The notes under the pieces: generated by a model | Database searches by the model: none | The model's input: the letters and a program-made list of their open reading frames with translations, nothing else | What the model was told of the DNA's origin: nothing | Shown here: in pieces, positions 2,875-31,513 of the stretch | How the letters are laid out: each line of letters opens with the position of its first letter | How positions within the stretch are numbered: the stretch's first letter is position 1 | Position numbers and translations under genes: made by a program | NCBI GenBank assembly: GCA_973895155.1 | Contig: OZ316899.1 | Span: 1,449,573-1,513,572 of the forward strand | Direction of reading: 5' to 3' | Origin: Marsupella aquatica | Lineage: Eukaryota > Plantae > Marchantiophyta | Length of the DNA: 64,000 nt

Positions 2875-2934
2875 AGTGGATCTGTGGAGTACTTTGGGAG
2901 TTCCACAGAGGATCAAAGGATCAAAGGATCAAAC

Positions 2935-8205: not shown

Positions 8206-8384
8206 GTGGTTGGTACAACAACGTGGGTTGGTACAACTACGTGGTTAGGTACAACTACGTGGTTAGGTACAACTACGTGATTAGGTACAACTACGTGATT
8301 AGGTACAACTACGTGATTAGGTACAACTATGTGGTTAGGTACAACTATGTGGTTAGGTACAACTATGTGGTTAGGTACAACTAT
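8206..8384 (+). repeat. 18-bp tandem array (GTGGTTAGGTACAACTAC) in the 5' LTR U3, 10 units
   Basis: Units counted directly. The 3' LTR has 9, which explains the 475 vs 457 bp LTR lengths. Confidence 0.95.
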
Positions 8385-9158
8385 GTTGCACACTATATCA
8401 TAAGAGGCATGTGTGCTTGGAGAGGTAGAACCAAGGCTCATTGTTATGGAGCCACTTGAGAGATAGGGAGAGCTTACACTGTGGAGACTCGGTATAGCCG
8501 ACGGGCTTAGAGTTTAGTAAAGCTCTCTTGTGTGTTCCCGTGGACGTAGCCTCAAGGAGGTGAACCACGTATCTCTTGTGTCGACTATTATGCGTTGGAT
8601 GGTTCATGGGCTTGCCGTTGCGATCGTCGTCTATGCTCAACAATTGGTATCAGAGCATGCTTGGGAGGTGACGTGTGTTCGTGACGGGATTTCATGACGG
8701 TTTTTCCAGCGTTGAGTGTTGGTGGATTTTCCAGAGTTCCATCGCATGGAACTTGGAGTTTATGGGCTCAACGGATAGATCAGGGCAAGAGCTTTCTAAC
8801 GGTGTGAAGAAATCGTTGAACGGAGCTCGTGGTGCAGAGAGATCTAAGTTTTCGTCGTTCTGGATTTTGTGAAGAAAGTTGGCAATCGACTCGGAGGGAG
8901 AAGCGTCAAGTGTTTTGACTCAACGGAGAGATTGAGGCAAGACGATTGTTTTTGAGTCCGGGATTGGCTCTTTGATGCAAAGAGGAAGGCTAAGCAAAAT
9001 CAATTACCTTGTTGGACTTGGTGACGGCACCAAGTGCAATTGATCAACATTCGTTGTTGACAAGTATTGGACTCCTAGCTTTGTGGGCTACGCGGCGGTG
9101 TTGAGTTTCGAGTTTTTTGAGAAGTTGTGAAAAACAACATTTTTTGTGACTTTCTCAT

Positions 9159-10193
9159 ATGAGTGATTCGGAGGAGTTTTTCGAAGACGTGGAACTTGAA
9201 GCACGAGGATCACCGCGGAGGTTTCAGGGGCAGAGAGAGGAGCAGGAGGAAGAGCACGTGACACCGATACCATCACTGGTGCGGCGTGTGGTGGAGGAAG
9301 CAGTACTACTACCGGAGCTCACGGTAAAGAAGAAGATGGGGACTTTCAAGCTTGGGGGACCCAAGTATGAAGTGACAAAGTATGATGGGCGCTCTGACTA
9401 CTTGCTATGGGAGAAGCAGGTGAAGGGAGTGCTTTATGCGTCAGGGATGGGCCAACTGCTGAGCCCTCGTGAAGACGATGTTGATGAGAAACAATAGGAC
9501 CGCATGCAGGAGCAGGGAGTGTGGTGTGTTACACTCTATCTCATGCCTCCCATCATCAAGCAGTTAGGTGCACATAAGGATTGCATGTCCTTGTTTGCGG
9601 AATTGCAGAGCAAGTATCACCGCAAGGAGTTGTCGAACCGGCTCTACACTTCCTACAAACTGATGAGTTTCAGGATGAAGGAATCTGGTACGAAGTTGCA
9701 AGACCATGTGGATGCTTTCAACGACATGGTCGTTGACTTGGAAAACCTTGGGGAGACTTTGAATGATGAGACGAAGGCTCTGCAGCTTCTTAGTTCATTG
9801 CCTCCATCTTACCAGTCCCTATCACGAGTGTTGTTGCATCGTGATAGGGATACCATTTCATACAATGACGTGGTAAGTTCTCTGCTTAGTGATGATCTTC
9901 AGCAGAAGATGCACATCACGTCACAGCCTTCATCATCTGGTGCTGCCCTCAATGTTAACCGTGGGAGGAGTATGCAGCGACCAACTGGGGACCGTAGAAC
10001 CCAGTTTAGATCTAAATCCAGATCTAAGTCCAAGGGTAAATCCCCTCAGAGGAGGCAGGTGACATGTTGGAAGTGCAACCAAGTTGGACACTTCAAGCGA
10101 GACTGTAAGGGAAAGGCAGCGGAAACTTCATCGGCAAATGTGGCTAGGGCTGATGGAGAAGCTGATTTACTCAATGATGAGTATGTTTTATGA
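9159..10193 (+). CDS. gag: Copia A gag (one premature TAG at 9495-9497)
   Basis: KYDGRSDYLLWEKQV, UBN2-type capsid region, CWKCNQVGHFKRDC zinc knuckle. Confidence 0.9.
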
Positions 10194-13100
10194 AGCCGGG
10201 GGTATGCCCTGTGCACGTCATCTAGGAGAGCAGATGATGTGTGGATTCTTGATTGTGCTTGCTCTTTTCATATTTGTTACATTCGTGAGTTTTTCAGTTC
10301 TTACTCTGTTTCAAACGGTTCAGTTCTGATGGGAAATGATCACTCCTGTCAAATTGAGGGAATTGGGTCTGTGAAGATTCAAATGTTTGATGGCGCTGTG
10401 CGCATAGTGTCCGGAGTCAGGTATGTACCTGGCATGCGTAAGAATCTGATTTCACTCGGTGTGTTGGATTCAAATGGTCATCAATGGAGCGTTATTGATG
10501 GTGAACTTCAAGTCAGGTCGGGAGAGACAGTGATTTTGAAGGGGAGTAGACAAAAGAATTTGTATGTGTTACAGGGCAATACTGTATGTGGAGAGGCCAA
10601 TGTAACCAAGTCTCACGAGGAGATGACTCAACTGTGGCATTCACGGCTAGGCCACATGAGTGAGAAGGGTTTGGCTATCTTACGGAAGAATGGACTCATT
10701 TCTGATTTGCAATCTTGTAAATTAGAGTTTTGTGAGCATTGCATTCTTGGAAAGCAGCATCGTCGTGCTTTTGGTGTTGGAACTCATCGTTCCAAAGCGG
10801 TTCTTGAGTACATACATAGTGACGTGTGGGGTCCATCCCCGACTCCCTCACACTCTGGAAAGTTGTACTATATATCATTTATTGATGATTACTCAAGATT
10901 TGTGTGGATTTATTTCATGACGCATAAGTCTGATGTCTTGTCCATTTTTAAGAAGTGGAAGGCCCAGGTGGAGAATCAGACTGGAAACACGATCAAGTGT
11001 TTGGATACAAGGGTGAAGAGTCTGAGGTCAGACAACGGCGGGGAGTACACTTCAATGGAATTTGAAGAGTACTGTTCAGAACAGGGGATAACTCGCCATC
11101 TCACCACAGTTTATACTCCGCAGCAGAATGGTGTCGCTGAGAGGCTCAATCGGACACTGTTGGAGCGGTCACGGAGTATGTTGAGCCAATCAGGTTTACC
11201 ACAAGAATTTTGGGCAGAAGCTGTCAATACCGCAGCTTATTTGGTAAATCTTTCTCCTTCTAGTGCTATCAATTTCAAAACGCCGTTTGAGATGCGCTAT
11301 AAGCGGCAAGCAGACTATCATGGCTTGGTAATTTTTGGAAGTGATGCATATGCTCTCACACCAAAGCAGAATAGGACCAAGTTGGATCCTACCTCCAGGA
11401 AATGTGTTTTTCTTGGGTACCAGAGTGGTGTGAAAGCCTATAGGCTATGGGATCCTATTGCCTGTAAGCTCGTTGTCAGTAGGGATGTTTCCTTCAATGA
11501 ATCCAGATTATTGAAGGAGGGGGAGAATACTCAGGTCTCCCGTACTGACAAAAGAAAATCTCCTATCCCGGATCTCGTTGAGGGGGAGATTGGTTATGAG
11601 GTGCATGACCGGAGAGAAGGAGTTGCTCCAATTATGGAGCTGGTTCCTGTGCCAGAGGAACCAGAGGAGTTTGTTGATGCTGGTGAGCAGCAAGTGGATG
11701 CTGTTGAGCTTCAAATTGTACCAGCACACGCAGATCAACCGGAGTCATCGGCTAGAAGAACATCTGGTCGCACTGTACGCGCTCCATCAAGGTATGGACA
11801 GTGGGTTGATTCATCTCAACTGCAAGAGGATGATTTTACAGCTGATGATGAGGGTGATGCGTTAATTTTGGAAGAAGGAGAACCTTCTTCATTTCATGAG
11901 GCAAGTGCTTCAAAGGAGAAGCAAAAGTGGACTGCAGCAATGCAAACAGAGATGCAGTCACTAAAGGACAACAAAACTTGGGAGCTTGTTAAGCTGCCTA
12001 AGGGTCAGCAAGTGGTGGACAGCAAGTGGATTTACAAGCTGAAGGATAATTCCATAGGAGGTGGATCGAAGGTCTACAAGGCTAGATTGGTAGCAAAGGG
12101 ATTCACACAAGAGAAAGGTGTGGATTACAATGAGGTCTTCTCACCAGTTGCTAAGTACTCTACAATACGACTATTGTGTGTACTTGTTGTAATGTTTGGT
12201 CTGCTCCTAGATCAGATGGATGTTGTCACAGCTTTCCTCTATGGCACATTGGAAGAGGTGATCTTCATGAGACAACCGCTAGGTTTTGTGAAGAGAGGAC
12301 AGGAGGAATTGGTTTGCAGATTGCTGAAATCCTTGTATGGGTTGAAGCAGTCACCAAGACAGTGGAACAAGCGGTTTGACGATTGGATTCGGTCACAAGG
12401 TTTTCACAGAAGTGTATTTGACCCTTGTGTGTATTTGAAACCGGTGAAGAATGTTGTCTTTGGGTTCATTGTTTTAGTACTTTATGTGGATGACATGCTA
12501 ATTGCAGCCAAGGATAGGTCTGAGATTGTTAAGCTCAAGGCACTGCTTAGTGCAGAGTTTAAGATGAAGGACTTAGGGCCAGCTAAGAGGATTTTGGGTA
12601 TGGAGATCACTAGGGACTTGGAGGCTGGCAAGCTATGGTTGACGCAGAGCAGTTATGCGAGGAAGGTAATTGCAAGGTTCAACATGGAGAATAGCAAGCC
12701 AGTAAGTACCCCGTTGGCTCCACACTTCAAGTTATCATCAGCGTTCTGTCCTACGGATGACACAGAGAAGGGGTTGATGTCAAAGGTTCCATATGACAAG
12801 GCAGTGGGGAGTCTCATGTATTTGATGACTTGCACTAGACCTGATCTTGCCATGGCTATGGGCAAGGTGAGCAGGTACATGTCGAATCCAGGGAAGGTAC
12901 ACTGGGAAGCAGTGAAGTGGATTATCAGGTACTTGAAGGGTACCGTGGATCATGGTCTTTTATTTGATGCGAATGCAAAGAATGCTAGATCATTGATTGG
13001 CTATGTAGATTCTGACTATGGACAAGATTTGGACCGAAGGAGATCAACAACAGGATACGTGTTCACACTTGGCGGTGGATGCATAAGTTGGAGGTCTACT

Positions 13101-13466
13101 TTGCAGAAGTGTATTGCTCAGTCTACTACAGAAGCGGAGTATGTTGCAGCTGCGGAAGCAGCAAAGGAAGCGATTTGGTTGGATAGACTTATCACTGAAA
13201 TGGGATTGCCACAGGGGAATGTGAAGCTCCATTGTGATAGTCAAAGTGCGCTCCACCTTGCTGTGAACCAGGTGATGGACAGCAGAGTGAAGCACATTGA
13301 CGTCAGGTACCATTTTATCAGGCAGGCTGTGTCTGATAAATTGTTTGAGCTAGTCAAGATTGATGGTAAACTCAACCCGGCTGACGCATTTACCAAAGTG
13401 ATTCCTTTGGAGAGTTTCTCTAGACACCGTGACGTATTGCAGATTTTGCAATTGCATCACAAGTAG
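10194..13466 (+). CDS. pol: Copia A pol (protease, GAG-pre-integrase, integrase, RT, RNase H), open frame
   Basis: WILDC, LWHSRLGH, HSDVWGP, LRSDNGGEY, YKARLVAKG, LYVDDML, GYVDSD. In frame with gag after the TGA at 10191-10193. Confidence 0.95.
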   Translation, partial: SRGYALCTSSRRADDVWILDCACSFHICYIREFFSSYSVSNGSVLMGNDHSCQIEGIGSVKIQMFDGAVRIVSGVRYVPGMRKNLISLGVLDSNGHQWSVIDGELQVRSGETVILKGSRQKNLYVLQGNTVCGEANVTKSHEEMTQLWHSRLGHMSEKGLAILRKNGLISDLQSCKLEFCEHCILGKQHRRAFGVGTHRSKAVLEYIHSDVWGPSPTPSHSGKLYYISFIDDYSRFVWIYFMTHKSDVLSIFKKWKAQVENQTGNTIKCLDTRVKSLRSDNGGEYTSMEFEEYCSEQGITRHLTTVYTPQQNGVAERLNRTLLERSRSMLSQSGLPQEFWAEAVNTAAYLVNLSPSSAINFKTPFEMRYKRQADYHGLVIFGSDAYALTPKQNRTKLDPTSRKCVFLGYQSGVKAYRLWDPIACKLVVSRDVSFNESRLLKEGENTQVSRTDKRKSPIPDLVEGEIGYEVHDRREGVAPIMELVPVPEEPEEFVDAGEQQVDAVELQIVPAHADQPESSARRTSGRTVRAPSRYGQWVDSSQLQEDDFTADDEGDALILEEGEPSSFHEASASKEKQKWTAAMQTEMQSLKDNKTWELVKLPKGQQVVDSKWIYKLKDNSIGGGSKVYKARLVAKGFTQEKGVDYNEVFSPVAKYSTIRLLCVLVVMFGLLLDQMDVVTAFLYGTLEEVIFMRQPLGFVKRGQEELVCRLLKSLYGLKQSPRQWNKRFDDWIRSQGFHRSVFDPCVYLKPVKNVVFGFIVLVLYVDDMLIAAKDRSEIVKLKALLSAEFKMKDLGPAKRILGMEITRDLEAGKLWLTQSSYARKVIARFNMENSKPVSTPLAPHFKLSSAFCPTDDTEKGLMSKVPYDKAVGSLMYLMTCTRPDLAMAMGKVSRYMSNPGKVHWEAVKWIIRYLKGTVDHGLLFDANAKNARSLIGYVDSDYGQDLDRRRSTTGYVFTLGGGCISWRSTLQKCIAQSTTEAEYVAAAEAAKEAIWLDRLITEMGLPQGNVKLHCDSQSALHLAVNQVMDSRVKHIDVRYHFIRQAVSDKLFELVKIDGKLNPADAFTKVIPLESFSRHRDVLQILQLHHK

Positions 13467-13695
13467 AGTTTTCTTAAACATTCATTGTAATTACTGATAT
13501 ATGCTCTTCCTCATTCCTATGTATTAGGCTACGGCTTAGTTCTGGTTTGCTCTAGTTAGAGAGGGAAACCGGTTTGGTTTCTGTCCAGAACTTCCCGCTG
13601 ATGGATCATATACATTGGCAGTATTACTCTCCCCTAGACCAGAGTCAAGGGGAAGATTGTTGGGTATTTACTCTTACGTCTAGGTTAGGTATGAC

Positions 13696-13856
13696 GTGGT
13701 TGGTACAACAACGTGGGTTGGTACAACTACGTGGTTAGGTACAACTACGTGGTTAGGTACAACTACGTGATTAGGTACAACTACGTGATTAGGTACAACT
13801 ATGTGATTAGGTACAACTATGTGGTTAGGTACAACTATGTGGTTAGGTACAACTAA
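13696..13856 (+). repeat. 18-bp tandem array in the 3' LTR, 9 units
   Basis: Same unit as 8206-8384. Confidence 0.95.
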
Positions 13857-15441
13857 GTTGCACACTATATCATAAGAGGCATGTGTGCTTGGAGAGGTAG
13901 AACCAAGGCTCATTGTTATGGAGCCACTTGAGAGATAGGGAGAGCTTACACTGTGGAGACTCGGTATAGCCGACGGGCTTAGAGTTCAGTAAAGCTCTCT
14001 TGTGTGTTCCCGTGGACGTAGCCTCAAGGAGGTGAACCACGTATCTCTTGTGTCGACTATTATGCGTTGGATGGTTCATGGGCTTGCCGTTGCGATCGTC
14101 GTCTATGCTCAACAGAGACCACCAATGAAGACAAAGCAATGACAATGCAGAGGGCTCTGAGTGATTGCAGACCTCAAGAGTTGAGAAACCCTGGAATGAT
14201 TTCTTTGTGCCTAGCTTGGCAAAAGAGAAAGCTCTCGAACGGGTGGAAAATTGATCTGCAAGTGCCACAGACAGAGTGTGGCTCATCAATTCTGTGGCTC
14301 ATCCGTTGTCCATGGAGGAGTACATTATAGAGTATCACATTTGACTAATGTCCTATACATGGAATACAGGACCGTTGAGTTGAAATCGTAGCTCAGCAAA
14401 GGCAAAGAAAAACCCCCCGCACCCCACCTTAGTTCTGCACAACACTTCCGCACACTAGAATACTAGTGTATAAGGATGGTGGGGATTCAAGCTTCACAGC
14501 CAAAGCAGAATGAAAGTGCCGACAATATACTTTGATCTACATTTCCATAGTGAAATCCAAGTTTGACCCCGGCCCCGACCTCAGATTGCTATAGTGATGG
14601 GCGTGCATAAGAGAGGGAGAGATTTTGTACGTACTTGAGGATCGCGAGTGAGAAAAATCTGCAGGAGAGAGGACAATGGAGAGCGGAGACGATGGACGAG
14701 CGAGACCGAGAGAGAGGGCAAGAGAGAGCGAGGAGAGAATTGAGCAAGAGAGGAAACCCTGTAGAACTCAGGGAACCCAGTAGAACTTAGCCCTACCGTA
14801 GCATATCAAAGAGAAAGAAAGCAAGGCAATAGCAGCAATTAGACCCTACCGAGAGACGGAGATGACCAGCACCGCAGCTCAACTTTGTAGAGGTGTTGGA
14901 TGACTACCATGACCACAGCAAGGCTTCGCGCAAGGCAAAAAGTAAGTCTAGGGCACATTTACGCATTGTCACTTTCTACCGAGAGCAAGCATTGTGATAG
15001 CAGACATGCAAAGCTCCATTCCAATGCTGCGCATGGCAAAGTCAGAGGTAAGTACTTACAAAGCAGATGGCGGAAGATGGACCCCCACACCACAAACTTA
15101 TGCCCCGACCCTAAAATAACTGACCGCAATGCCCCCGCAATGCCTTCGGGGAGCACTTGCTCTCGCACTTAGCACTCGACTGAAAATCGCTGCCGTTGCG
15201 CTTCAAGTGTGGTCGTAAACACTTCCGCCTTCCTAAAAGCTCTAGTAAGAGTGGTAGCGAGAAGAAATCCCGACACACTCCTCATTTGCTCCTCCTCCCT
15301 CCTTGATCAATCGACTATCGACTATCGATAGTCACCTCATTCGCTCCTCCTCCCCTTCCCTCCCCTCGCTAAACCCTCTCTGCTGACGAAGACCTTAAAC
15401 TTTCGCTCCCGCGCACAAGGGTGGAGAGTACTAATGTACTC

Positions 15442-15600
15442 AGCCAGTGACATGTAAGGGAGCCAGTTACATGCAAGGGGCTCATGTAACGGAGCCAATG
15501 ACATGTAAGGGGCTGATGTAAAGGACCCAATGACATGTAAGGGAGCCAGTGACATGCAAGGGGCTCATGTAAAGGAGCCAGTGACATGTAAGGGGCTCAC
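15442..15600. repeat. Minisatellite in the CACTA subterminal region (AGCCAGTGACATGTAAGGG-type units)
   Basis: Repeated GACATGTAAGGG and CTCATGTAAAGG blocks. Confidence 0.8.
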
Positions 15601-16261
15601 CTAATGGGGTACCTCTACTATTTGAGACTTTCTCACATTAAAAGCTTGAATGTTTGGCAATTGGTGATTAGCACTCACTCACATAAGTACTTAGCACTAA
15701 GACATTTGGCTTGGATAGTGGACCTGCCATTTTCCTTATGAAGGAGTCGCAACAAATGAGTGGATAGTTTGTAGAAGTGATACTTAAGACATATGTAGTG
15801 ATAACTCCCTAAACTTTCATAACCTTGTCACATTAGTCAATAGTGGTTTGGTCAAAAATAGGGGGTATTTCTACTAGTGGTTGGAGTGATGCCCAACACA
15901 CCATGGTGAGTGCTTGTGTTGCTGACAGGGACAGATTGCCCTTAGGGTTAGCATATAGATTAGGTTGGTCACCATGGATTCTTCTGGTGCTGTTGGGTTA
16001 CCCGATGGACGACGGACCGGTTTCACTCGGAGTGGGGCGCAGTTTTGGCCAACGACATTGGTAGCAGTCAACAGCACAGCTTCAGACAGTGATTCTGACG
16101 AGGACTTTGTGAGCAGTTCTCCTCGTCATCAGGTGATTGCACCTTTGTTGTGGGATATGGAAGAGATGTACGAGGCTACGAAGGGCCCACGATGATACTC
16201 TGGTGCAGTTGGCACAATTGATCTGGATGACTTCATCCAGGAGTTTGATACGTGGTGCGAT

Positions 16262-17596
16262 ATGCAGACATTGCATAATGCCACATTGTTTACCCCTTTC
16301 ATGGCATGGAAGGGATTATTTCAGCATTTGGAGGGGCCACCCATGGATGACTACCATGAGTTTTGGAAGGCTCATTTGGTTGAGATTGAGGCATGGAGGC
16401 AGCATTGGTCGCCTAATTCCGTGTCCATCACCTATGGCACTAGTGCGGCTGCCCAACCCATTGCCACAGATGTTGCTTCTTCTAGCAGCACTAGCCAGAG
16501 TGGCACACCATCCACCAGCAGCACTCTAGCAGCATCCACCACTACTCCTGCCGGTGTGATTGCGACAGGGACTGGAGCTGCGCCAACATTTAACCTTGTG
16601 GTGGAATTCTTTGAGGTACTGAAGCAGAACTATCAGGGTGTGAGAACTGATAAGTTGAAGGGTCTCCAGGAGTTTTAGCGCAAGACTGGAGAGAGTCTGC
16701 GTGAGGCATACACTTGTATGCGCAGATTGATCACTGTCACCAAGGAAGTGACAGAGGCTCAAGCAGTCCAGTTTTGGTATGCAATTCTGGATAGAGAGTT
16801 GCGACGCAGAGTGAGAGATGTCACTCTACTTAGGGATGCAGATCCCACATTAGCAGTTGTTTTTACCCTTTATGAGCGCATTGAGCTCAATATGGTGAAT
16901 GAGAAGGTGGTGACTTCCGGATTTGCCAAGGAAGCACCAAAGGCTGCATCTACATCCACACCACAGCCTACTACACAAAAGAGCCAGAGGGAGAAGCCTA
17001 CTGCACGAGAGTCTACCAGCCAGAGACCTGTACCCTCTTATGCTGGACAACAGTCAGGATATTGGACCTGTGGTGGGGATCATGGACAGAGATATTGCCC
17101 AGATCATAGAGGATCAGGGGGAGCATCAGCGCCTGATCAGCGACAGTGTGATCACTGTGGAGCTCCTGGACACAAGGATAGGTGTTTCTCACTCCATCCT
17201 GAGTTACGGATAGGAGGATCCCGTACACATGATCAGGGAAGAGGAGGAGGTAGAGGTGGTGGACGTGATCGTGGCATGCCACATGCAGGGAGACAGGGAG
17301 GTGACGCTGCCCTTGCTGTAACCATAGATCCAAAGGATGCTAAGATTGCTCAATTGGAGCAACAGCTAGCTGCCATGGCTACTTCCCAGGTGAGACCTAC
17401 TTCTGGTGATGGGGCATCTACATCCTATGGACCTTCCACATCCCATGGTCCTTCCATATCTTATGGAGCTGATGGAGACCTTGCCACCATGGGATTCATG
17501 TGTGGCACTGCACATATTGATGCATCAGTAGCTTTGACACGTGGGGCAGCCAAAGCTCTTGAGCCCCGAGGAGCAGTAGTGGAGCTAGATCCATAG
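16262..17596 (+). pseudogene. gag: Gypsy copy 2 gag with zinc-knuckle-like motifs, interrupted by a stop
   Basis: GESLREAYTCMRRLI-type capsid segment, TCGGDHGQRYC and CDHCGAPGHKDRC. Confidence 0.75.
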
Positions 17597-18059
17597 AGGG
17601 GGGATGCACGTCGGCAGACAAAGCTTCCTCAGTCTTTTACATTGTTAGAGACAGTTCAGACTGCCTCTATGAACCCGGTTCGGACAAACCCTGGCGTGGG
17701 TAAGTTGGCAGAATCAGGTAGTGATGCAGCAGGGATGACAGGTACCTTGCTGGGGGCGGCTACTGCCATGGTACGTGCCCCATTATTTTCAGCGACAGAC
17801 ATGCTGAACTTGGGAGTTGGTCTTGCAGAAGTGTTTAGATTGGCAGCTACACTCTATGAGGACACTCTAGTGGTTTCTTCCCATGCAAAAGCAGCTTGCA
17901 GTGTTGAAGCAGTGAAGGCCATGCCACCTACTGCTACTAGTGAGACATGGCATGCAACAACAGCGAGATTGGTGGATTTACCAGCACGCCCTGCATTTGA
18001 GAGGACTAGGTTTAAACCTAGTGTTGTGTCATTGGATAATTGAAGTGGTATCTTTTGAT

Positions 18060-21000
18060 TAGTTAGGCCTTCTGGGGCAATATACCAGCCAGAGAGAGTG
18101 TTACTGGATACTGGCGCTTAGCCCTTGATGTTGGGTAAGTCTGCCATACGTGGATTGGGATTGCATCCAGAGGATTTGGAGGATTGTCCCTTTCCCATTT
18201 AGACTTCATTGGGGGGACCTACACCTACACAACACATTACCAGGAGACCTCTTGATTTGAGGATTCAGGAAGGTCATACCATAGATAGCTCACAGATATA
18301 GGTGCGAGCTATTTTGACTAAGGCAGAGTCATATGATGTGTTGGTGGGATGTACAGTGCTCTACCCCATGGGATTTATTCTTGATTTTTGGGAGGAATCA
18401 GTGTCATATAGACCTGATTGGCAGTCAGGAGATGCTCGATTGAGAAAATTGTCAGTGAGATTTAGTGGACCTGTGGGAGGCCCTAAATCCACACCATTGT
18501 CTTTGGCAGCATTCAGTGGTCTAATTGCTGGACCTGATGATTTGATTGAGGGTAATGCGCATGCAGCAGATGTTCCACCATTGGAGGAGTCTCATGAGGA
18601 GCACATCATGCGAGGATTACCTGTTGGCAGTGTTGTGCCACCAGTGTGGGGCACTGCACAGGCCTTACCATAGGCAACAGCATGATTGGTACATGATGCA
18701 TGGCGTCATGCTTTTACACCACAGTCAGGACCAGAGCAGTCTCTTGCTGATGGACCTGTGACTCTTTCACCATTGGATACCACTCCTATTGCTTGGCAAT
18801 ATCCACTGGAGGGTATTTGTTTGTTGGATCTTTTTGGTGGGATTAGCACTAGATTGGCTGTTATTCTTCAAGCAGGAATTCCTATGCGTTGTTATTTGTA
18901 TGTGGAGACAGATGAGACAGCACTGAGGGTCTCATTGCGACATGTGGCTATGTTGGTGGATAGATATCTACAATTGTTGCTAGTGGATGCTATTTGTGGT
19001 GCTGACAGGTCCAAGACAGCATTGGATCGAATCCTTGCAGGTTTGGATTTTGTCAAATGTTATATTGATGATATTTTGGTCTATTCTTCTACTGTGGAAG
19101 AACATTAGCAGCACTTGCAGATTGTGTTTGAGAGATTGAGAGCACATGGGTTGAAGCTCCATCCTAGCAAGTGTAAATTTTTCCAAGACCAGATTGAGTA
19201 TTTGGGCCACACTATATACCCAGGGGGATTGGGTGTACAACAAACTAAAGTGGAGGCCATTACACAGATTCCTTGTCCTACTGATGTGAGTAGAGTTCGT
19301 GCATTCTTGGGATTGGCAAGCTACTACAGGAGGTATGTTAAAGGATTTAGCCAGCTTGCTAAACCTTTGACCATACTCACTAAGTTGGATCATGAATGGA
19401 TTTGGGGTGATGACCAAGAGCATGCCTTTCAGGAGTTGAAGCAAAGGTTGGCATCATCCCCTATTTTGAGAAGACCCATTTCAGGCAGACCATTTCAGCT
19501 ACACACTGATTGGAGTGGAGTAGGACTTGGAGCAGTGTTGACTCAAAAGGATGATGAGGGGAATGAGTTTGTTGTGGCTTATGCCAGTAGATCAAACAAT
19601 TTAGCAGAGGCTAAGTATAGCTCGTATGAAGGAGAGTGTTTGGCAGTAGTGTGGGCTGTTGCACACTTTCGTTGCTACTTGTTTGGTAACCCCTTCACCT
19701 TCATCACTGATCATCAGCCTCTTAAGTGGTTAATGGAGTGTGACAAGTTTACAAGGAAGCTTGCACGATGGGCATTGTTGTTACAGGAGTATGATTTCTA
19801 GGTGGTGCATAGGCCTGGAAAAGTGAACTTGGATGCAAATGGATTAAGCCGCAATCCATGTACCAGTCAGTAGGATGAGACTGGAGCCAGATGGCATGAT
19901 GAGTCAGATAAGGAGATGGTGCTAGGATGGCATGCATCTGCCTTTCTTTGTTGGGTGCTAGCATACAGTGGATCTGTGGACTCTACCTCATTGGATGGAG
20001 TGGATGAGGAGTCTTCAGATGTGGATGTTGGTGAGGTAACTTTTGGACAGCAAGATATTCACAATGATGTGAGAGTGTTGGAATATCTGCGTAGTGGTTC
20101 TATTGTTGGCAGTGTTGATGCCAAAGAACGTGACAGGGTTCTACAGAGAGCCAAGAGGTTTCGATGGGAGGGAAACCATGTCTTGAGAGTACTGCATGAT
20201 GGTAGGGTGTTGGTGGTACCAAAACCATCACAACGAGTACATTTGGTGCGACATGCACATGAGAAGTTGGGGCACTTTGGTGTGAAGCGCACTTATAGTT
20301 TGCTGCAAACACAGTATTGGTGGCGTGGTATGCACATTCATGTCCAGCAATTGATAGCTAAGTGTGTGGTATGTGATAGAGTGAGAGCATCATTTAATGC
20401 TCCCACTCCCCAGTTGCACCCGTTGCCGATCATGGGTTTGGGATATCGTTGGAGTTTGGATTTTTCTGGTCCATTACCTCTTACCCAACGTCATAATCGA
20501 TATGTTTTGGTCATGGTGGAGCACTTCTCCAAGTGGATTGAGCCAGTGGCGTTGCCCGATAAAGCTAGTGGAGGAGTTGCTGCTACATTTTTGGATTGTG
20601 CACTCAGTCATTTTGGAGCACCAGCTGAGGCGTTGACTGATCAGGGAACTGAGTTCCGTGGAGAGTTTGAGAGTTTGTGTGAACAAGCTCTGATTGATCA
20701 TCGTACTACCTCTCGTGATCATCCTAAGGCAGATGGATTAGCTGAGAGAGTTGTGCAAACTATGAAGAGAGGATTGCACAAGTATGGCTTGCAGGTTGGT
20801 CATTTGGGAGATTGGGATCTCCAGCTACCTTGGTTAGCTATGGGCTACCGTTTCAGTCAGCAAGCATCACTTGCATCCTTCTCACCTTACTTTTTGCTCT
20901 ATGGTAGAGAGCCAGATTTGCCAGCAGCTATTCGTCGTGATGTTGCACCAATTGTGAACTTGGATGATCCTGATGTTTGGATCAAGGTGTGTTCAAAGAG

Positions 21001-21496
21001 AGCACGGGTATTTTAGAGAGTGATGCCCATGGCTTTTGACAACCTTGCCATTGCCCAACATCGTGATACTTTGAGGTATGCCACTATTCGTGGAGGAGGT
21101 TACCGTGCAAGCATTCGATGATTTCATCCTGGTGATTATGTTTATTTGCAGCAGACAGCACCCATGACACTTGATGTGACCGCATGCCGGACAATCTTAC
21201 GTGTGCGTGAAGTGTTGCCTTCTGGTGTCCTGATGTTGGAGGGACGCGATGGTATGGTTTGGAAGGATCATGTGCGCAACTGTGCATCATGTCACCTTCC
21301 CAACATTGATGGTATAATAGATCCAAGCTTGGCACATGTTCGTGCTGGCTTGAAATGTATGTTGTGTGGATCTGCTCAGGGAGCAGCTACTATGTTGATT
21401 TGTGATAAGTGTTCTAGAGGATGACACATGCCATGTTTGACACCACCATTGCAAGTGATTCCTAGTGGATCATGGTTGTGTCCTCGGTGTCAGTGA
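18060..21496 (+). pseudogene. pol: Gypsy copy 2 pol: protease - MTase N-terminus (internally deleted) - RT C-terminus - RNase H - integrase - PHD
   Basis: VLLDTGA at about 18100; LLDLFGGIST at about 18820; YIDD at about 19060; HTDWS...AYASRS; HAHEKLGH...CVVC, WSLDFSGP, LTDQGTEF, AERVV. Many in-frame stops. Confidence 0.92.
21356..21496 (+). CDS. PHD finger (C4-H-C3) at the integrase C-terminus
   Basis: CMLCGSAQGAATMLICDKCSRG*HMPCLTPPLQVIPSGSWLCPRCQ-stop. The internal * (TGA 21422-21424) is most simply a TGG-to-TGA change. Confidence 0.9.
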
Positions 21497-21671
21497 AGCC
21501 GACTAGTTATCATTTGTGTTCTCTTGGCAGATATGGATTGCAGGTAGGTGATCGATGGGGCTCACTTGCACCCGGCCTCCTGATCTTCACACCTAAAAAG
21601 GTGTATATCAACCTTGTAGAACTCATGGCTAGCTAGAGTTAGGGGACCTTACTCCCAGCTAGGGGGGCAAT

Positions 21672-22502
21672 TGTGGGTTTTGGACATGTGTGGACATGAG
21701 TTCCACTTGTATTCCATTCTCTTGTGTTTGTGATGTGGCAGTGTGACTATGTTTGGATGTATGTGACAAGTGATGTATGTTGTGTAGCGATGTGTATGTG
21801 CACGACAGCTGTCACACCATTCTAGGTAGTGTTAGAGTGTATCGTACTATCTAGATCCGTATATTTGGTATGTGTGCTATATGAGCTGATAAGGTTCCGT
21901 TAGGTTTGTGTGAGAGGGTACTTCTCACTTGTGAGGCATTGAAAGGTCATCTTTCAATGTTGAGCCTTGGAGAGGGGAGCTTGTGTGATGGCTATGGTGG
22001 TTGAGAGCTCTCTCTCTATGTAGCATGGATTCCTTGAGTGCAAGGTGCATTGGCTCGACATACATGTGTGATCGGATCGGACAGGATTGAGTGCGTATTG
22101 TTGGCGTCGATCGTTGTGCCGATTGTATTGAGATTATTGTGGGTTTTGGACATGTGTGGACATGAGTTCCACTTGTATTCCATTCTCTTGTGTTTGTGAT
22201 GTGGTAGTGTGACTATGTTTGGATGTATGTGACAAGCGATGTATGTTGTGTAGCGATGTATATGCGCACGACATATGTCAAGCCAACGCACCTTGCACTC
22301 AAGGAATCCACGCTACATAGAAGGAGCTCTCAGCCACCATAGCCACCACACAAGTTTCCCTCTCCAAGGCTCAACAGTGAAAGGTAACCTTTCAATGCCT
22401 CACAAACGTGAACTGAACCCTATCGGCTCGTATAGCACACATATGAAACATATAAACCTAGATAGCATGATACACTCTAATACTACCTAGAATGGTGTGA
22501 CA
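21672..22502. repeat. Rearranged LTR-like block: A-B(+)-C-A-B(-)
   Basis: A = 21672-21807 and 22138-22273 (near identical). B = 21810-22060 and an inverted, more diverged copy at 22276-22502, both with TGTCA...GACA ends. Confidence 0.8.
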
Positions 22503-23974: not shown

Positions 23975-24551
23975 ATATACCCCCATCTCAACGTCTACAC
24001 AAAGTAAAATGTTACACACTTTTTCCATACAACTTGTTTCTCTAAATTGCGAAAACCATAACATCTCACTTTTTCTATTTAAAATGATTCCCAAAATACC
24101 CAGATTATTAGATTCGTAACTTATCAATACTATTTGTTTGGTAAAACAACCATCATAAAATTTTCGTAAATATTTTGAAGTTATAACTTTTGCAACTATG
24201 CCATTCAAACACCATCATAATCTTAATGAAGTAGAAACTCTTGCAATGTATTTGCCATACAAAATATTTTGCAATTGTAGATGCAAATTGTTTTGGATGT
24301 GCGGAGCGATCATGACGCCTTCTTATGCAATATTTTCATCTGTGTAGTTTTGCTAATTATTACAATGCAATGAAACTTGCAAATTATTTGCAAAGATATT
24401 GGATTTGGAATGTAGTGTTGTGATGAATTCAGGATGGCAAAGTATGAAGCATGTTGTTTTGCCATAGTTGCAGTGCACTCTCCATGGCAAATCTCCAAGG
24501 GACAAAGAAACCACCTTCGCAAAATGGCCAAATATGTAGTAGTGCATGTTT

Positions 24552-27500
24552 TGTTGAGCATAGACGATACTCGTAACGGTAAGCACATGACACATCCAAC
24601 GCGCAAGTAGTCGACACAAGAGATACGTGGTTCACCTCCTCGAGGCTACGTCCACGGGAACACACAAGAGAGCTTTACTGAACTCTAAGCCCGTCGGCTA
24701 TACCAAGTCTCCACAGTGTAAGCTCTCCTCATCTCTCAAATGGCTCCATAACAATGAGCCTAAGTTCCACTTATCCAAGCAAACACCGCTTGGCATATAG
24801 TGTGCATCCTAGTTAACCTAACCACGTCTCCGACTACGGTTAGTCTAACTATGGTTACATGTCGTAACCCTAGACCTTGAGTAAATACCTAACAATCTCC
24901 CCCTTGACTCTGGTCTAGGGGAGGGTAATACTGCTAACCTATATGATTCCTCAGCGGGAAGTTCTGGACGAAAACCAACATGGTTTCTCCTCTCTAACTA
25001 GAGCAAACCAGAACTAAGCCGTAGCCTATTACTAGGAGTGAAGAAGAGCATATATCAGTAATTACAGCGAATGTTAAGAAAAACCCTTACTTGTGATGCA
25101 ATTGCAAAACCTGCAGCATGTCACGATGTCTAGAAAAACTTTCCGAAGGAATCACTTTGGTAAATGCATCAGCTGGGTTGAGTTTACCGTCTATCTTGAC
25201 TAGCTCAAACAAATTATCAGACACAGCCTGCCTGATAAAATGGTACCTGATGTCTATGTGCTTCACTCTACTGTCCATCACCTGGTTCACAGCAAGGTGG
25301 AGCGCACTTTGACTATCACAATGGAGCTTCACATTCCCCTGTGGCAATCCCATTTCAGTGATAAGTCTATCCAACCAAATCGCTTCCTTCGTTGCTTCCG
25401 CTACTGCAACATACTCCGCTTCTGTAGTAGACTGAGCAATACACTTTTGCAAAGTAGACCTCCAACTTATGCATCCACCGCCAAGTGTGAACACGTACCC
25501 TGTTGTTGATCTCCTTTGGTCCAGATCTTGTCCATAGTCAGAATCTACATAGCCAATCAATGATCTTGCATTCTTTGCATTTGCATCAAATAAAAGACCA
25601 TGATCCACGGTACCCTTCAAGTACCTGATAATCCACTTCACTGCTTCCCAGTGTACCTTCCCTGGATTTGACATGTACCTGCTCACCTTGCCCATAGCCA
25701 TGGCAAGATCAGGTCTAGTGCAAGTCATCAAATACATGAGACTTCCCACTGCCTTATCATAAGGAACCTTTGACATCAGCCCCTTCTTTGTCGCATCTAT
25801 GGGACAAAAAGTTGATGACAATTTGAAGTGTGCAGCCAAAGGGGTACTTACTGGCTTGCTATCCCCCATGTTGAACCTAGGAATTACTTTCCTCGCATAA
25901 CTGCTTTGTGTCAACCATAGCTTACCAGCCTCCAAGTCCCTAGTGATCTCCATACCCAAAATCCTCTTAGCTGGCCCTAGGTCCTTCATCTTAAACTCTG
26001 CACTTAGCAGTGCCTTAAGCTTAACAATCTCAGACCTATCCTTGGCCGCAATAAGCATGTCATCCACATAAAGTACTAAAACAATAAACCCAAAGACAAC
26101 ATTCTTCACCGGTTTCAAATATACACAAGGGTCAAACACACTCCTGTGAAAACCTTGTGACCGAATCCAATCGTCAAACCGCTTGTTCCACCATCTTGGT
26201 GACTGCTTCAACCCATACAAGGATTTCAGCAATCTGCAAACCAATTCCTCTTGTCCTCTCTTCACAAAACCTAGCGGCTGTCTCATGAAGATCACCTCTT
26301 CCAAGGTGCCATAGAGGAAAGCTGTGACAACATCCATCTGATCTAGCAGCAAACCAAACATTACAACAAGTACACACAATAGCCGTATTGTAGAGTACTT
26401 AGCAACTGGTGAGAAGACCTCATTGTAATCCACACCTTTTTCCTGTGTGAATCCCTTGGCTACCAACCTAGCCTTGTAGACCTTTGATCCACCTCCCGTA
26501 GACTGATCCTTCAGTTTGTATATCCATTTACTGTCCACCACTTGCTGACCCTTAGGTAGCTTAACAAGCTCCCAAGTTTTGTTGTCCTTCAATGACTGCA
26601 TCTCCATTTGCATTGCTGCAGTCCACTTTTGCTTCTCCTTTGAAGCACTTGCCTCATGAAATGAAGAAGGTTCCCCTTCTTCCAAAATTAACGCATCACC
26701 CTCATCATCAGCTGAAAAATTGTCCTCTTGCAGTTGAGATGAATCAACCCACTGTCCATACCTAGGAGGAGCGCGTACAATGCAACCAGATGTTCTTCTA
26801 GCCAATGACTCCAGTTGAATTGCGTCTACTGGTACAATTTGAAGCTCAGCAGCATCCACTTGCTGTTCACCAGCATCAACAAACTCCTCTTGTTCCTCTG
26901 GCATAGGAACCAGCTCCATGCTTGGAGCACCTCCTTCTCTCCAATCATGCACTTCATGATCAATCTCCCCCTCAATGAGATCTGGGATAGGAGATTTCCT
27001 TTTGTTAGTACGGGAGACCTGAGTATTCTCTCCCTCCTTCAATAATCTGGATTCATTGAAGGAAACATCCCTACTGACAACAAGCTTACAGGCAATAGGA
27101 TCCCATAGCCTGTAGGCCTTCACACCACTCTGATACCCAAGAAAAATACATTTCTTGGACGTAGGATCCAACTTGGTCCTATTCTGTTTTGGGGTGAGAG
27201 CATATGCATCACTTCCAAAAACTACCAAGCCATGATAGTCTGCTTGCCGCTTATAACGCATTTCAAACGGCGTTTTGAAATTGATTGCACTAGAAAGAGA
27301 AAGATTTACCAAATAAGCTGCAGTATTGACAGCTTCTGCCCAAAATTCCTGTGATAAACCTGATTGGCTCAACATACTCCGTGACCGCTCCAATAGTGTT
27401 CGATTGAGCCTCTTAGCGACACCATTCTGCTGCGGAGTATAAACTGTGGTGAGATGACGAGTTATCCCCTGTTCTGCACAATACTCTTCAAATTCTATTG

Positions 27501-30500
27501 AAGTGTACTCCCCGCCGTTATCTGACCTCAGACTCTTCACCCTGGTATCCAAACACTTAACCGTGTTTCCCATCTGATTCTCCACTTGGGCCTTCCACTT
27601 TGTAAAAATCGACAAGACATCAGACTTATGCGTCATAAAATAAATTCATACAAATCTTGAGTAATCGTCAATGAAGGATACATAGTACAATTTTCCAGAT
27701 TGTGAGGGAGTCGGAGATGGTCCCCACACATCACTATGTATGTACTCAAGAACCGCTTTGGAACAATGAGTTCCAACACCGAAAGCACGACGATGCTGCT
27801 TTCCAAGAATGCAATGTTCACAGAACTCTAATTTACAAGATTGCAAATTAGAAATGAGTCCATTCTTCCGTAAGATAGCCAAACCCTTTTCACTCATGTG
27901 GCCTAGCCGTGAATGCCACAGTTGAGTCATTTCCTCGTGAGACTTGGTTACATTGGCCTCTCCATATACTGTATTGCCCTGCAACACATACAAATTCTTC
28001 TGTTTGCTCCCCTTCAAAATCACTGTCTCTCCCGACATGACTTAAAGTTCACCATCAATTACTCGCCATTGATGACCATTTGTATCCAACACACCGAGTG
28101 AAATCAAATTCTTACGCATGCCATGTACAAACCTGACTCCGGACACTATGCGCACAATGCCATCAAACATTTGAATCTTTACAGATCCAATACCCTCAAC
28201 TCGACAGGAGTGATCATTTCCCATCAAAACTGAACCGTTTGACACAGAATAAGAATTGAAATACTCGTGAATGTAACAAATATGAAAAGAGCAAGCACAA
28301 TCAAGAATCCACACATCATTTTCTCTCCTAGATGATGTGCACAGGGCATACTCCTGACTTCATAAAACATACTCATCATTGAGTAAATCAACTTCTCCAT
28401 CAGCACTAGCCACATTGGCTGATGAAGATTCAACTGCCTTACCCTTACAATCCCTCTTAACGTGACCAACCTTGTGACACTTCCAGCAGACTACTGGCTT
28501 TCTCTCCTGGGACTTCCCCCTTGAAGCAAATCTTGTCCTAGATTTACTTCGTCCCTTGCCATTTGTGCGCTGCTCGGGACGCCGCTGTGACCTCCCACAA
28601 TTCACATTCCAGGCAGCACCAGATGATGATGCTGTTTGGGCTTGACCCAACTTCTTCTGTGCATCATCTGACAGCAAAGAGCTTACCACCTCATCGTATG
28701 AAATAGACTTCAAGTCTCTATACAAGAGAACCTGCTTCAAACCCTGATAAGATGAGGGTAAGGAGCTGAGAAGAAGCAAGGCCTTGTTCTCTTCTTCAAC
28801 GCCCTTACCGAGATTAGACAAATCAATAGCTAGGCTATCAAATTCATCCAAGTGATCCTGGAGATTGTTCCCCTCTTTGAGCCGAAGGCTCATTAAGAGA
28901 GACTTCTTGTACAATCGATCTGATGCATCCTCCCGATAGTACTTCTCCCTTAGGGCTTTGAATAGAGATGCACCATCTGCGTAGTCATCCAACTTCTTGA
29001 TGATATGCGGCTTCAGATAAAGCATCACCGCATTCACTGCAATTACTTGTTCCTGCCTTCACCTCTTTAGTGGAATCTCCTCCTCATCATCATACATCTC
29101 TCGTGTAGAGAGAAGATGATCTAGGCCCATAGCGCGAAGAACTCCTTTCACTTGCTTCTCCTAGAGCAAGTAGTCCGTATGCCCATCATATTTTTCCACC
29201 TCAAACTTGACACCTCCGAACCTGGATGCCATCTGTTTTTCCTTCACAATCCCTTCTACTCGCTGCATCGGTGATTGTACCGGTGTCACGTGCGCTTCCT
29301 CCTGCTCCTCTCTCTCCTCCTCAAACCGTCGTGGTGATCCTCGTGCTTCAAGATCCACTTCTTCAAAAATCTCCTCCGAATCACTCATGTCAGAATGCAA
29401 GAAAAAATGATGTTTTTTCAACTTCTTCAAAAAACTCAAAACTCATCACCGCCGCGTAGCCCACAAGCCTAGCTCTCCAATGCTGAAAACCAAAATCAAA
29501 AACGAACTCCGATGTAAAAGTTATTCACTTTTTGGTCGGGGTGGGTAAAACTTGGAATTCTCCCCCGTTTTGACCACCTTGGGGAATAACCAAAAAGTGA
29601 ACTAGTACCCAACATCGGAAATGCAATTCAATTTGTGCACCGCGTTGGCAACTCCGATGGCTAGCAACTTGCCAAAGACGAACGAAAAAAATTACCTTTC
29701 GGCGGACGGAATCTTTGACGGACGGCCAAAAACACGCTCTCTATTTTTCAGGAATATTCCTGCACAGAGCAGCAGGGCTCATAGGGGGCCGTTCCCCCTG
29801 TCCAAGCGGTTAAAGTAGAGGGCGGCAGGTCCCGGGATGTGGCAGCCAATCAGAAGGGAGGAAAAAGAAAAAAGAAAAAAGGGTCTAAAGGGGGTTGGGG
29901 ACCCCTTTTTAAATCAGGCGTATAAGGCCAGGGTATGCGCAGGGGTATCGCGCGGCAGCGGCATACCGGCAGGCAGGATCGGGAGGCAAGGGCGGGCCGG
30001 CGAGGGTGCAGCCGGGAAACGGCTGCCGGGAGCTTAGGGTGTGCAAGGGCAGCCCGCGGGCTATGAGGGTCCGACAGGGTTGGGGAGGGCACGGGGCAGA
30101 CGGCCGGCGCTGCGTGGCCGTGGTCGGGGTGTGGTGTACGTGGGGAGGGTGAAGGGGGGGGAACGTGTCGACGGCAGGGAGGGGCGAGGTAAGGTGTGTA
30201 TACACACCCGCACTTTGTGTGTATACACACAAAGTGCCAATAAATGCCCCTTATAGCCCCTCAACAATACAAAGGATTTAACCCCAAAGAAGTCAAATTC
30301 AGACGCACCACCGGTAAGGGTCCGAAAAAAAAATCAAAAAATTCTCTCCAATGTGGAACGGAGGTCTCTAGAGAGAGAGAGAGTCGTAAATGGAGTATTT
30401 TTTGAATAAAAAATTAGCCCGTAAGAAATCCAAAAAACCTTGTGGAAATCAAACGAGAAGAGCTTGCACCTTGTAACGTTCGGATTATGGTGAGGAATCA

Positions 30501-31513
30501 GAAACCAATGTTGGTGGGTTGGAAAGATTTGCGCACCCGCATCGTTTGCTGGTCAATCAGTGGCAAAAACTCAGAACTCCTTCCTCCCGTGGGCAAAATC
30601 ATCAATCTTGGACTCAAAACGATCACCTCTTCGTGATCTATCCGTTTAGCCCAAGCACTTCACGTCTCTCCCTCCGAGTCGAGCGCAATGATGAGAAACC
30701 CCGCTCAGGCAAAAGAGGACTCCATAGCCGGTCAGAAAATCAGAATGCTTCTTTTGCTCATTGCGATGCACTCGTTACACACTCGGCGACAAACCATCTA
30801 CCAAAACGATCAGCTCGTCCCGATCTACAAGCAGAGCTACAGCATGTGACGCCTCCTTCGCCGTAGAGCTTACACCGTCGGGAAAACAAACTCTGGTCGC
30901 TCTCCAAAAAACCGTCGAACACGAATGTTGCCAACTTTCTTCATAAATTCCAGAACGATAAAAACTTAGATCTCTCCGCCCCACGATCTCCGTTCAACGA
31001 TTTCTTTGCACCGTTAGAAAGCCCTTGCCCCGATCTATCCGCTGAGCCTATAAACTCCAAGTTCCATACAACGGAACTCCGGGAAATCCACCGACACTCA
31101 ACGCTGAAAAAAACAGTCACAAAATCCCGTCACGAACAATGTCACCTCCCAGGCATGCTCTGATACCAATTGTTGAGCATAGACGATACTCGTAACGGTA
31201 AGCACATGACACATCCAATGCGCAAGTAGTCGACACAAGAGATACGTGGTTCACCTCCTCGAGGCTACGTCCACGGGAACACACAAGAGAGCTTTACTGA
31301 ACTCTAAGCCCGTCGGCTATACCAAGTCTCCACAGTGTAAGCTCTCCTCATCTCTCAAGTGGCTCCATAACAATGAGCCTAAGTTCCACTTATCCAAGCA
31401 AACACTGCTTGGCATATAGTGTGCATCCTAGTTAACCTAACCACGTCTCCGACTACGGTTAGTCTAACTATGGTTACATGTCGTAACCCTAGACCTTGAG
31501 TAAATACCTAACA
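24552..31513 (-). mobile_element. Full-length Ty1/Copia element B with long 5' leader
   Basis: 343-bp LTRs 24552-24894 and 31171-31513, TSD TGTTT, iMet PBS at about 31157-31168, gag 28360-29400, pol 25087-28359 with a few stops. Confidence 0.97.
25087..29400 (-). pseudogene. gag-pol: Copia B gag-pol with premature stops
   Basis: ORF segments 29161-29439, 28360-29037, 28042-28314, 27646-28038 and 25087-27636. Pol is highly similar to Copia A. Confidence 0.93.

Follow-up and report, generated by a model that had tools for sequence, protein, structure and literature searches.

What does a PHD finger do at the end of a retrotransposon integrase, and is it connected in function with the DNA methyltransferase that the same family of elements carries? 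These questions are raised by a Ty3/gypsy copy in a 64,000-nucleotide stretch of the liverwort Marsupella aquatica (GenBank assembly GCA_973895155.1, contig OZ316899.1, forward-strand positions 1,449,573 to 1,513,572), which is referred to here as the window and is numbered from its first letter. The finger is the integrase C-terminal finger of a streptophyte "Gypsy-DNMT3" Ty3/gypsy element, and with a probability of roughly 0.6 it would tether integration to chromatin in which histone H3 is unmethylated at lysine 4 (H3K4me0). Methyltransferase-bearing gypsy elements are a known kind, and the PHD finger on their integrase is real and conserved. The copy in the window itself adds nothing functional, and its value is that of a pointer to the family. 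A first reading of the letters (the original prediction) had placed a reader (the PHD finger) and a writer (the methyltransferase) in one polyprotein, and had proposed that the element couples histone-guided integration with its own DNA methylation.

The finger and its class

The finger comprises 46 codons at 21356-21493 (+), with the codon of its first cysteine at 21356-21358 (+), and forms the last domain of the integrase, as recognised from the translation and by Pfam PF00628. The frame at 21146-21499 (+) translates as ...LKCMLCGSAQGAATMLICDKCSRG, a stop, HMPCLTPPLQVIPSGSWLCPRCQ and a second stop. All eight C4HC3 zinc ligands are present in canonical spacing (C-x2-C-x11-C-x2-C-x4-H-x2-C-x15-C-x2-C), and the domain lies in frame with the integrase open reading frame (ORF) at 19916-21016, in which Integrase_H2C2 and rve are found. 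When 48 residues were read through with the TGA codon 21422-21424 scored as X, PF00628 was matched over profile positions 1-47 of 47 with 47.9 bits (cut-off 24 bits, E 1.3e-12), which upholds the claim of a complete C4-H-C3 finger. Scored apart, the first half (92 amino acids) gave nothing at E 0.01 and the second 19.4 bits, so that the domain is recognised only with the X read-through. Judged by its sequence, this is a true PHD finger.

Three other identities were considered and rejected. A chance zinc-finger-like pattern is contradicted by the Pfam score and by a C4HC3 regular expression, whose single match in the six frames of the window is this very site and which found nothing when the window was simulated 200 times with a first-order Markov model. 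An ADD domain was dismissed because what Pfam recognises is an ordinary PF00628 PHD, and a chromodomain because Pfam gives a PHD and no Chromo for both the window copy and its relative in Marchantia polymorpha (L011); in the window integrase region, the Pfam search returned no Chromo match. The position of the finger is nonetheless the one where chromoviruses carry their chromodomain, as had been predicted, i.e., behind an SH3-like barrel at the C-terminal end of the integrase.

The in-frame TGA at 21422-21424 (+) falls, according to the translation and an alignment of relatives, in the column of the aromatic residue that precedes the zinc-binding histidine. Among 28 family members, this residue is tryptophan in 22, tyrosine or phenylalanine in four, and cysteine in one, and in the window it is the stop. 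The internal stop interrupts the frame, and a PHD cannot be made from the window copy. The second TGA, at 21494-21496 (+), is the natural stop of the pol frame, as close relatives end 0-4 residues past the last cysteine.

Of the 28 aligned family members, 24 have the whole domain, and column conservation was taken from a separate alignment of 21 sequences. Of the 24 complete fingers, 18 retain the full set of eight zinc ligands; in each of the remaining six, a single Cys has changed to Tyr or Ser, as is to be expected when copies decay. Columns without any variation include the aspartate after the third cysteine, the glycine two residues before the histidine, the histidine itself, and the proline of the PxGxW motif, while the glycine and tryptophan of PxGxW and the methionine three residues before the third cysteine are conserved at 90% or more. 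Synonymous sites are saturated in most pairs and the Ka/Ks values are rough; where dS could be estimated, dN/dS mostly falls at about 0.2-0.4 for the PHD, and the closest pairs give 0.06-0.09 for the tail before it. The sequences thus indicate a finger that is kept by selection, though evolving faster than the tail, and that has been held at the integrase end from Klebsormidium to mosses and liverworts.

The same columns bear on the idea of a finger that reads no chromatin at all and serves as a structural zinc module, needed for the integrase to fold or multimerise or for particles to assemble. Strict conservation is limited to the ligands and the hydrophobic core, with variable surface residues, which suits such a module. 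The invariant aspartate and the PxGxW motif, however, occupy positions that contact the peptide in H3K4me0-type PHD complexes, and the integrase C-terminus is the site of targeting domains in other gypsy lineages. We therefore consider a purely structural finger very unlikely.

The class of the finger was assessed through its neighbors in sequence and structure. The best sequence matches in the PDB are CHD4 PHD1/2, MLL3, PHF12, KDM5B and KDM5A PHD1, DPF3 and DPF2 PHD2, PHF21A/BHC80, ATXR5, UHRF1, AIRE, and BAZ2A/B, and the matches to PHDs that read H3K4me0 or unmodified H3 have E values from 1e-18 to 1e-8. With the H3K4me0 PHDs (BHC80, AIRE PHD1, CHD4 PHD1/2, KDM5A/B PHD1, DPF3 PHD2, BAZ2A/B, UHRF1, ATXR5), the family shares the pattern LLxCDxCxxx(aromatic)HxxCLxPPLxxxPxGxWxCPxC and the missing cage tryptophan. 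Readers of H3K4me3 of the BPTF/ING type need that tryptophan two residues before the histidine, and the family has glycine at this position in 26 of 28 members, the window included. In published structures, H3K4me0-type PHDs hold residues 1-4 of H3, and methylation of K4 or, for UHRF1, of R2 prevents this binding.

An AlphaFold2 model (m604b6ae43520) was made of residues 250-391 of P0012, a relative that has an intact finger and 79% integrase identity to the window. In it, an SH3-like barrel of five strands precedes the PHD, for which the predicted local distance difference test score (pLDDT) is about 76-83. In Foldseek, the modelled finger superposes at 0.6-1.5 Å on DPF3b, UHRF1, ATXR5, BAZ2A/B, BHC80, and KDM5B PHD1 (33-48% identity, TM score up to 0.88), and several of these targets were solved with unmodified H3 peptides. 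Judged on this relative, and not on the broken window copy, the PHD fold is present in the model. In both sequence and predicted fold, the closest solved structures are thus those of fingers that the literature describes as readers of unmodified H3, a likeness that the original prediction had drawn, and the finger likely belongs to the H3K4me0 class, with its specificity itself being a prediction. It differs from the known members of that class in sitting on a retrotransposon integrase and, in the liverwort/moss sub-lineage, in having no acidic residue before the first cysteine.

The top Foldseek matches were Tudor-PHD cassettes (PHF1, MTF2, and the UHRF1 TTD-PHD), found because the SH3-like integrase barrel precedes the PHD; the root-mean-square deviation (rmsd) is 14-16 Å, so that only the domain order is common.

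Could the finger bind something other than H3K4me0? It might tether the integrase to H3R2, H3K9, acylated H3K14, H3.1/H3.3, a host chromatin protein, or DNA, and serve either target choice or nuclear retention. The acidic residue before the first cysteine, which contacts Lys4 in BHC80 and AIRE, is missing in the liverwort/moss sub-lineage (G-L-K/R-C), just as had been noted for the window copy; an aspartate at position -3 is found in nine of the 28 members, all of them more distant and Klebsormidium among them. Furthermore, the nearest structures include fingers with different or additional preferences: UHRF1 reads R2, DPF3 reads K14ac with its first PHD, and the ATXR5 PHD works beside an H3.1-specific SET domain. 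The Tudor-PHD matches may also hint at joint reading by the SH3-like barrel and the PHD, but their high rmsd reflects domain order and not a common cassette, and the single-domain matches all read H3 residues 1-4. A ligand of another kind is thus possible but unlikely.

Finger and methyltransferase in the relatives

With the integrase ORF as the query of a word search, 192 proteins came up, of which 120 were listed, and rve together with PF00628 was found in 27 of these 120 integrase homologues, including proteins of Calypogeia fissa, Sphagnum fallax, and Klebsormidium nitens. Two elements from ENA assemblies (L003 and L008) show the arrangement of the family in consecutive ORFs, namely gag; protease (PR) with a DNA_methylase domain (PF00145, 43 bits), i.e., the DNA methyltransferase (DNMT); reverse transcriptase (RT) with RNase H (RH); and integrase (IN) with PHD. 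Searches by tblastn with the modules of L003 found both the DNMT and the IN-tail-PHD part in L002 (Calypogeia), L005/L006, L007 (Sphagnum), L008, and L009/L010. A full DNMT domain is present in a second copy within the window (5695-4736) and in L002, L003, L007, L008, and L011. The PHD scores in the relatives range from 33 to 49 bits, and PHD and methyltransferase co-occur in every relative with a readable upstream part. As the original prediction would have it, the window copy belongs to a methyltransferase-carrying family: the intact or near-intact methyltransferase copies (L011, L003, L008, L007, L002) all bear the PHD, so that its absence from intact carriers, which would have spoken against the prediction, was not observed. 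The PHD is a constant feature of this gypsy family.

The best preserved member is L011 of M. polymorpha (AP019869.1:10225128-10244964, gene Mp_4g09160). Its ORF1 is an uninterrupted frame of 1346 amino acids coding for gag, PR, and DNMT (PF00145), in which motifs I, IV, VI, and VIII are kept. ORF2, likewise uninterrupted, has 1043 amino acids with RVT_1, RNase H, Integrase_H2C2, rve, and the PHD (41.7 bits); it lies in the same frame as ORF1, from which a single TAG separates it. The terminal repeats are 99-100% identical, and the element is apparently intact and young. Its state points to possible continuing activity of the family in a model liverwort.

The stop between methyltransferase and RT is itself conserved. 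An in-frame TAG followed by CAA was found at this place in four relatives (L002, 8013-8015; L003, 3849-3851; L007, 8474-8476; L011, 11835-11837) and in the second window copy (4549-4547, minus strand), and L008 has TGA-CGG at 7244-7246. CARYYA is a read-through context known from plant viruses, into which TAG-CAA-TCA fits by sequence. The conserved stop thus looks like a programmed read-through site that would set the ratio of gag-PR-DNMT to RT-IN-PHD, and because of it the family likely makes two products, an abundant gag-PR-DNMT protein and a rarer read-through protein that adds RT-RH-IN-PHD.

This arrangement leaves part of the original prediction standing. A single polyprotein with both modules would arise only after stop-codon read-through, as the conserved stop (TAG-CAA, or TGA-CGG in L008) splits gag-PR-DNMT from RT-RH-IN-PHD. 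The reader-writer pair holds for the intact relatives, in which both co-occur, but not for the window copy, which retains only about 64 codons of the methyltransferase and has a broken PHD. The proposal of a coupling to the element's own DNA methylation, modelled on the ADD domain, fares worst: the PHD sits on the integrase and lies more than 1000 residues from the methyltransferase, with RT, RNase H, and integrase between them, a position not suited to regulating the enzyme. In its full form, such a coupling would mean that the PHD guides or activates the methyltransferase in the way ADD does in animal DNMT3, with methylation being placed where H3K4 is unmethylated. Co-occurrence in all relatives with readable upstream sequence speaks for it, as do the common reading frame in Marchantia, the presence of both modules in an unprocessed read-through polyprotein, and a PHD class that matches the H3K4me0 logic of ADD. 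The conserved stop and the intervening domains, on the other hand, keep the two apart, and the main DNMT product would be without the PHD; only an unprocessed read-through product, which the element's own protease should cut, would hold writer and reader in a single chain. Moreover, in animal DNMT3 the ADD domain (GATA-like plus PHD-like) abuts and regulates the catalytic domain within one polypeptide, whereas here a stop codon and three further domains stand between a plain PF00628 finger and the DNMT. A direct reader-writer coupling is consequently improbable.

The relatives also connect the window copy with elements already described. In de Mendoza et al. 2018 (PMC5890265), gypsy elements of K. 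nitens with a DNMT3-like enzyme and an A-coding-B-A-B layout of repeats are presented as KnitGypsy-Dnmt3. The present family shares with them the Ty3/gypsy type, the DNMT3-like methyltransferase within the coding region, and the repeat layout, which is found in L011 (A 4845-5122 and 15268-15545; B 15134-15246 and 15545-15657) and L007 (A 3135-3434 and 11881-12180; B 11763-11826 and 12219-12282). The K. nitens protein P0056 is an integrase-plus-PHD homologue with 51% identity over the integrase. The copies studied here differ in coming from liverworts and mosses rather than from Klebsormidium. The word PHD does not occur in the searched text, legends, and supplements of PMC5890265, a search that left the figure of that paper outside. 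The gene for P0056 sits at a contig start, so that sequence further 5' is not in the contig, and a word search with the DNMT gave no K. nitens protein within the length range searched. Two proteins of the zygnematophyte Closterium sp. NIES-53 (P0156 and P0157) were observed to be DNMT-RT relatives, with which the range of the lineage takes in Klebsormidium, Zygnematophyceae, mosses, and liverworts.

A second comparison is offered by the EpiLTRs, reported in 2026 (bioRxiv 10.64898/2026.05.21.726589) and described as long terminal repeat (LTR) elements with DAM, DNMT, and a chromodomain. Like the present family, they are LTR retrotransposons that join DNA-methyltransferase "writers" with a chromatin "reader"; they differ in their hosts (Euglena and Collodictyon), their DNMT4-like clade, their Chromo reader, and an independent assembly. 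In the literature searched on PHD-bearing retrotransposons, a limited library, the pairing of a PHD with a DNMT3-like enzyme is not described, and no paper on bryophyte members of the family or on a DNMT-plus-PHD pairing was found there, which is not proof of novelty.

Two metagenome sequences from JGI deserve separate mention. In L005 (8283-11815) and L006 (3-2821), a diverged DNMT-like ORF lies directly 5' of the IN-PHD ORF; it shows 42% identity to the DNMT of L003 and no Pfam match, and no RT was detected between the two ORFs. Writer and reader are neighbors here, and the sequences may come from a member of the family that is rearranged or derived.

A proposed role in integration targeting

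Targeting of integration to H3K4me0 chromatin, by analogy with other retrotransposons, would be the likeliest role of the PHD. In the scheme that we propose, gag-PR-DNMT would be the main product of the element, and read-through of the conserved UAG-CAA stop would add RT-RH-IN-PHD. Processing by the protease would then leave an integrase with the SH3-like barrel and the PHD, and the PHD would bind the N-terminal H3 tail when Lys4 is unmethylated. The integration complex would thereby be tethered to nucleosomes away from active promoters, in a manner resembling that of the chromodomains of chromoviruses, and the methyltransferase would form a second, physically separate module of the element.

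A precedent is provided by chromodomains, which direct gypsy integration, in chromoviruses to H3K9me (Gao et al. 2008 as cited in PMC6673714; bioRxiv 10.1101/2021.11.30.470311). Chromoviruses such as MAGGY and Tf1 resemble the present family in carrying a histone-reader domain on the integrase C-terminus after an SH3-like region, with a presumed tethering to a chromatin state. The reader of the present family is a PHD instead of a chromodomain, and its expected ligand is unmethylated H3K4 and not H3K9me. In the same two sources, fusions of PHD or Chromo domains with retrotransposons are described as widespread, and further PHDs are known from CR1-like long interspersed nuclear elements (LINEs; Kapitonov and Jurka 2003) and Chlamys Penelope-like elements (PLEs; PMC8557442). 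There, too, the PHD was captured as an accessory domain and is generally read as serving chromatin targeting; the element classes and the position of the PHD in the protein differ. In 2005, Perez-Alegre reportedly found a PHD in REM1 of Chlamydomonas.

Several points weigh against this reading. Taken as a whole, the P0012 model has only moderate confidence (mean pLDDT 67), and without the acidic residue before the first cysteine the specificity in the liverwort/moss sub-lineage could differ. The PHD evolves faster than the integrase tail (dN 0.2-0.27 versus 0.08-0.15), and between the window and Marchantia L011 it is identical at 31 of 45 residues (69%) versus 78 of 91 (86%) for the tail. The window copy is non-functional. 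Finally, we infer histone binding and the insertion-site preference of the family from analogy, and read-through of the TAG from the conserved stop and its context.

Going one step further, Gypsy-DNMT3 elements could be imagined as self-contained epigenetic modules, whose PHD-integrase inserts them into H3K4-unmethylated chromatin while an excess of their own DNMT3-like enzyme, ensured by the leaky stop, methylates the cDNA or the new insertion. If this were true, a retrotransposon would have convergently rebuilt the animal DNMT3 logic of reading H3K4me0 and writing 5-methylcytosine, and would control its own chromatin fate. We regard this extension as a speculative one that is probably wrong.

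Retrotransposons with chromatin readers show how mobile DNA picks its landing sites, and those with methyltransferases how host silencing may be manipulated. The Gypsy-DNMT3 lineage, which extends from charophyte algae to mosses and liverworts, has both reader and writer. M. polymorpha is a genetically tractable model plant, and the apparently intact L011 makes two questions testable, namely whether the PHD steers integration and whether reader and writer cooperate.

The decayed copy and its surroundings

The window copy shows the gypsy domain order PR-RT-RH-IN, all on the plus strand. Its gag with CCHC knuckles lies at 16152-17596, as seen from ORF translations and from blastn matches to ORF1 of L011 with 81% and 74% identity, and is followed by the aspartic protease region at 18032-18589 (tblastn with the protease segment of L003, E 1.7e-31). 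At 18809-19000 stands the remnant of the C5 DNA methyltransferase, with motif I (LLDLFGGIS) and about 64 codons, which are the only 64 amino acids covered in tblastn with the DNMT of L003. The C-terminal part of the RT (from YIDD onward) and RNase H occupy 19023-19801, with 124 bits for Pfam RT_RNaseH and only profile positions 170-205 of RVT_1 matched; this region is colinear with L011 from 12481. According to blastn comparisons with the second window copy and L011, an internal deletion of 1.6-1.7 kb, with its junction at about 18945-19023, took the remaining methyltransferase and the first half of the RT.

The integrase ORF at 19916-21016, with the N-terminal zinc domain (Integrase_H2C2, 58.8 bits) and the catalytic core (rve, 50.3 bits), has 73-79% identity to liverwort rve-plus-PHD proteins and is closed by a stop at 21014-21016. 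It is followed by the integrase C-terminal tail with the SH3-like beta-barrel region at 21050-21355 (63.5% identity to the IN tail of L003 in tblastn, E 2e-60), which has an in-frame stop at 21119-21121. Together with the TGA inside the PHD, integrase and tail thus contain three in-frame stops, and the window copy is dead and decayed.

At the 3' side, a terminal repeat block spans 21670-22285 (+), in which the direct repeats 21670-21819 and 22136-22285 (B...B) surround an "A" segment; homology to L011 stops at the start of the B repeat of L011. A 5' A repeat of this copy was found neither in 14115-16100 nor elsewhere in the window, where only the B-A-B block at the 3' side was seen. Inverted arms were also observed (21810-21901 with 22411-22502, and 21922-22015 with 22319-22412). 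Upstream of gag, at 15444-15607, repeat units of about 32 and 51 bp overlap one another (CCAGTGACATGTAAGGG...); this block may belong to the 5' untranslated region of the element.

On the minus strand, at 2803-6235, the family is represented by the second copy, a truncated one that has kept the DNMT, the TAG-CAA stop, the RT, and RNase H. Its methyltransferase retains motifs I, IV (PCQ), VI (ENV), and VIII, and almost the entire integrase with the PHD has been lost.

The window is crowded with nested copia elements, and TTTAGGG repeats at about 1530 mark it as DNA of a plant. Two Ty1/copia elements, at 8226-14114 (+) and 24551-31469 (-), have LTR pairs that are 98-99% identical; the former contains an open pol ORF of 1075 amino acids (10239-13466) and adjoins the 5' side of the PHD-bearing gypsy copy.

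Beyond the window, sequence words of 19916-21700 are present in sequencing runs of several organisms and in air metagenomes, and thousands of contigs of two runs (X1 and X2) cover this stretch at 85% likeness. Among the listed runs that contain it, none is recorded as RNA. At many positions, nearly all X1 and X2 contigs differ from the window by transitions (e.g., 21431 C>T), a pattern that identifies the window copy as decayed and its family as very abundant. The family appears to be extremely abundant in the two organisms behind X1 and X2, with matches also in runs X6-X9, and the pieces in air metagenomes perhaps stem from bryophyte spores or fragments.

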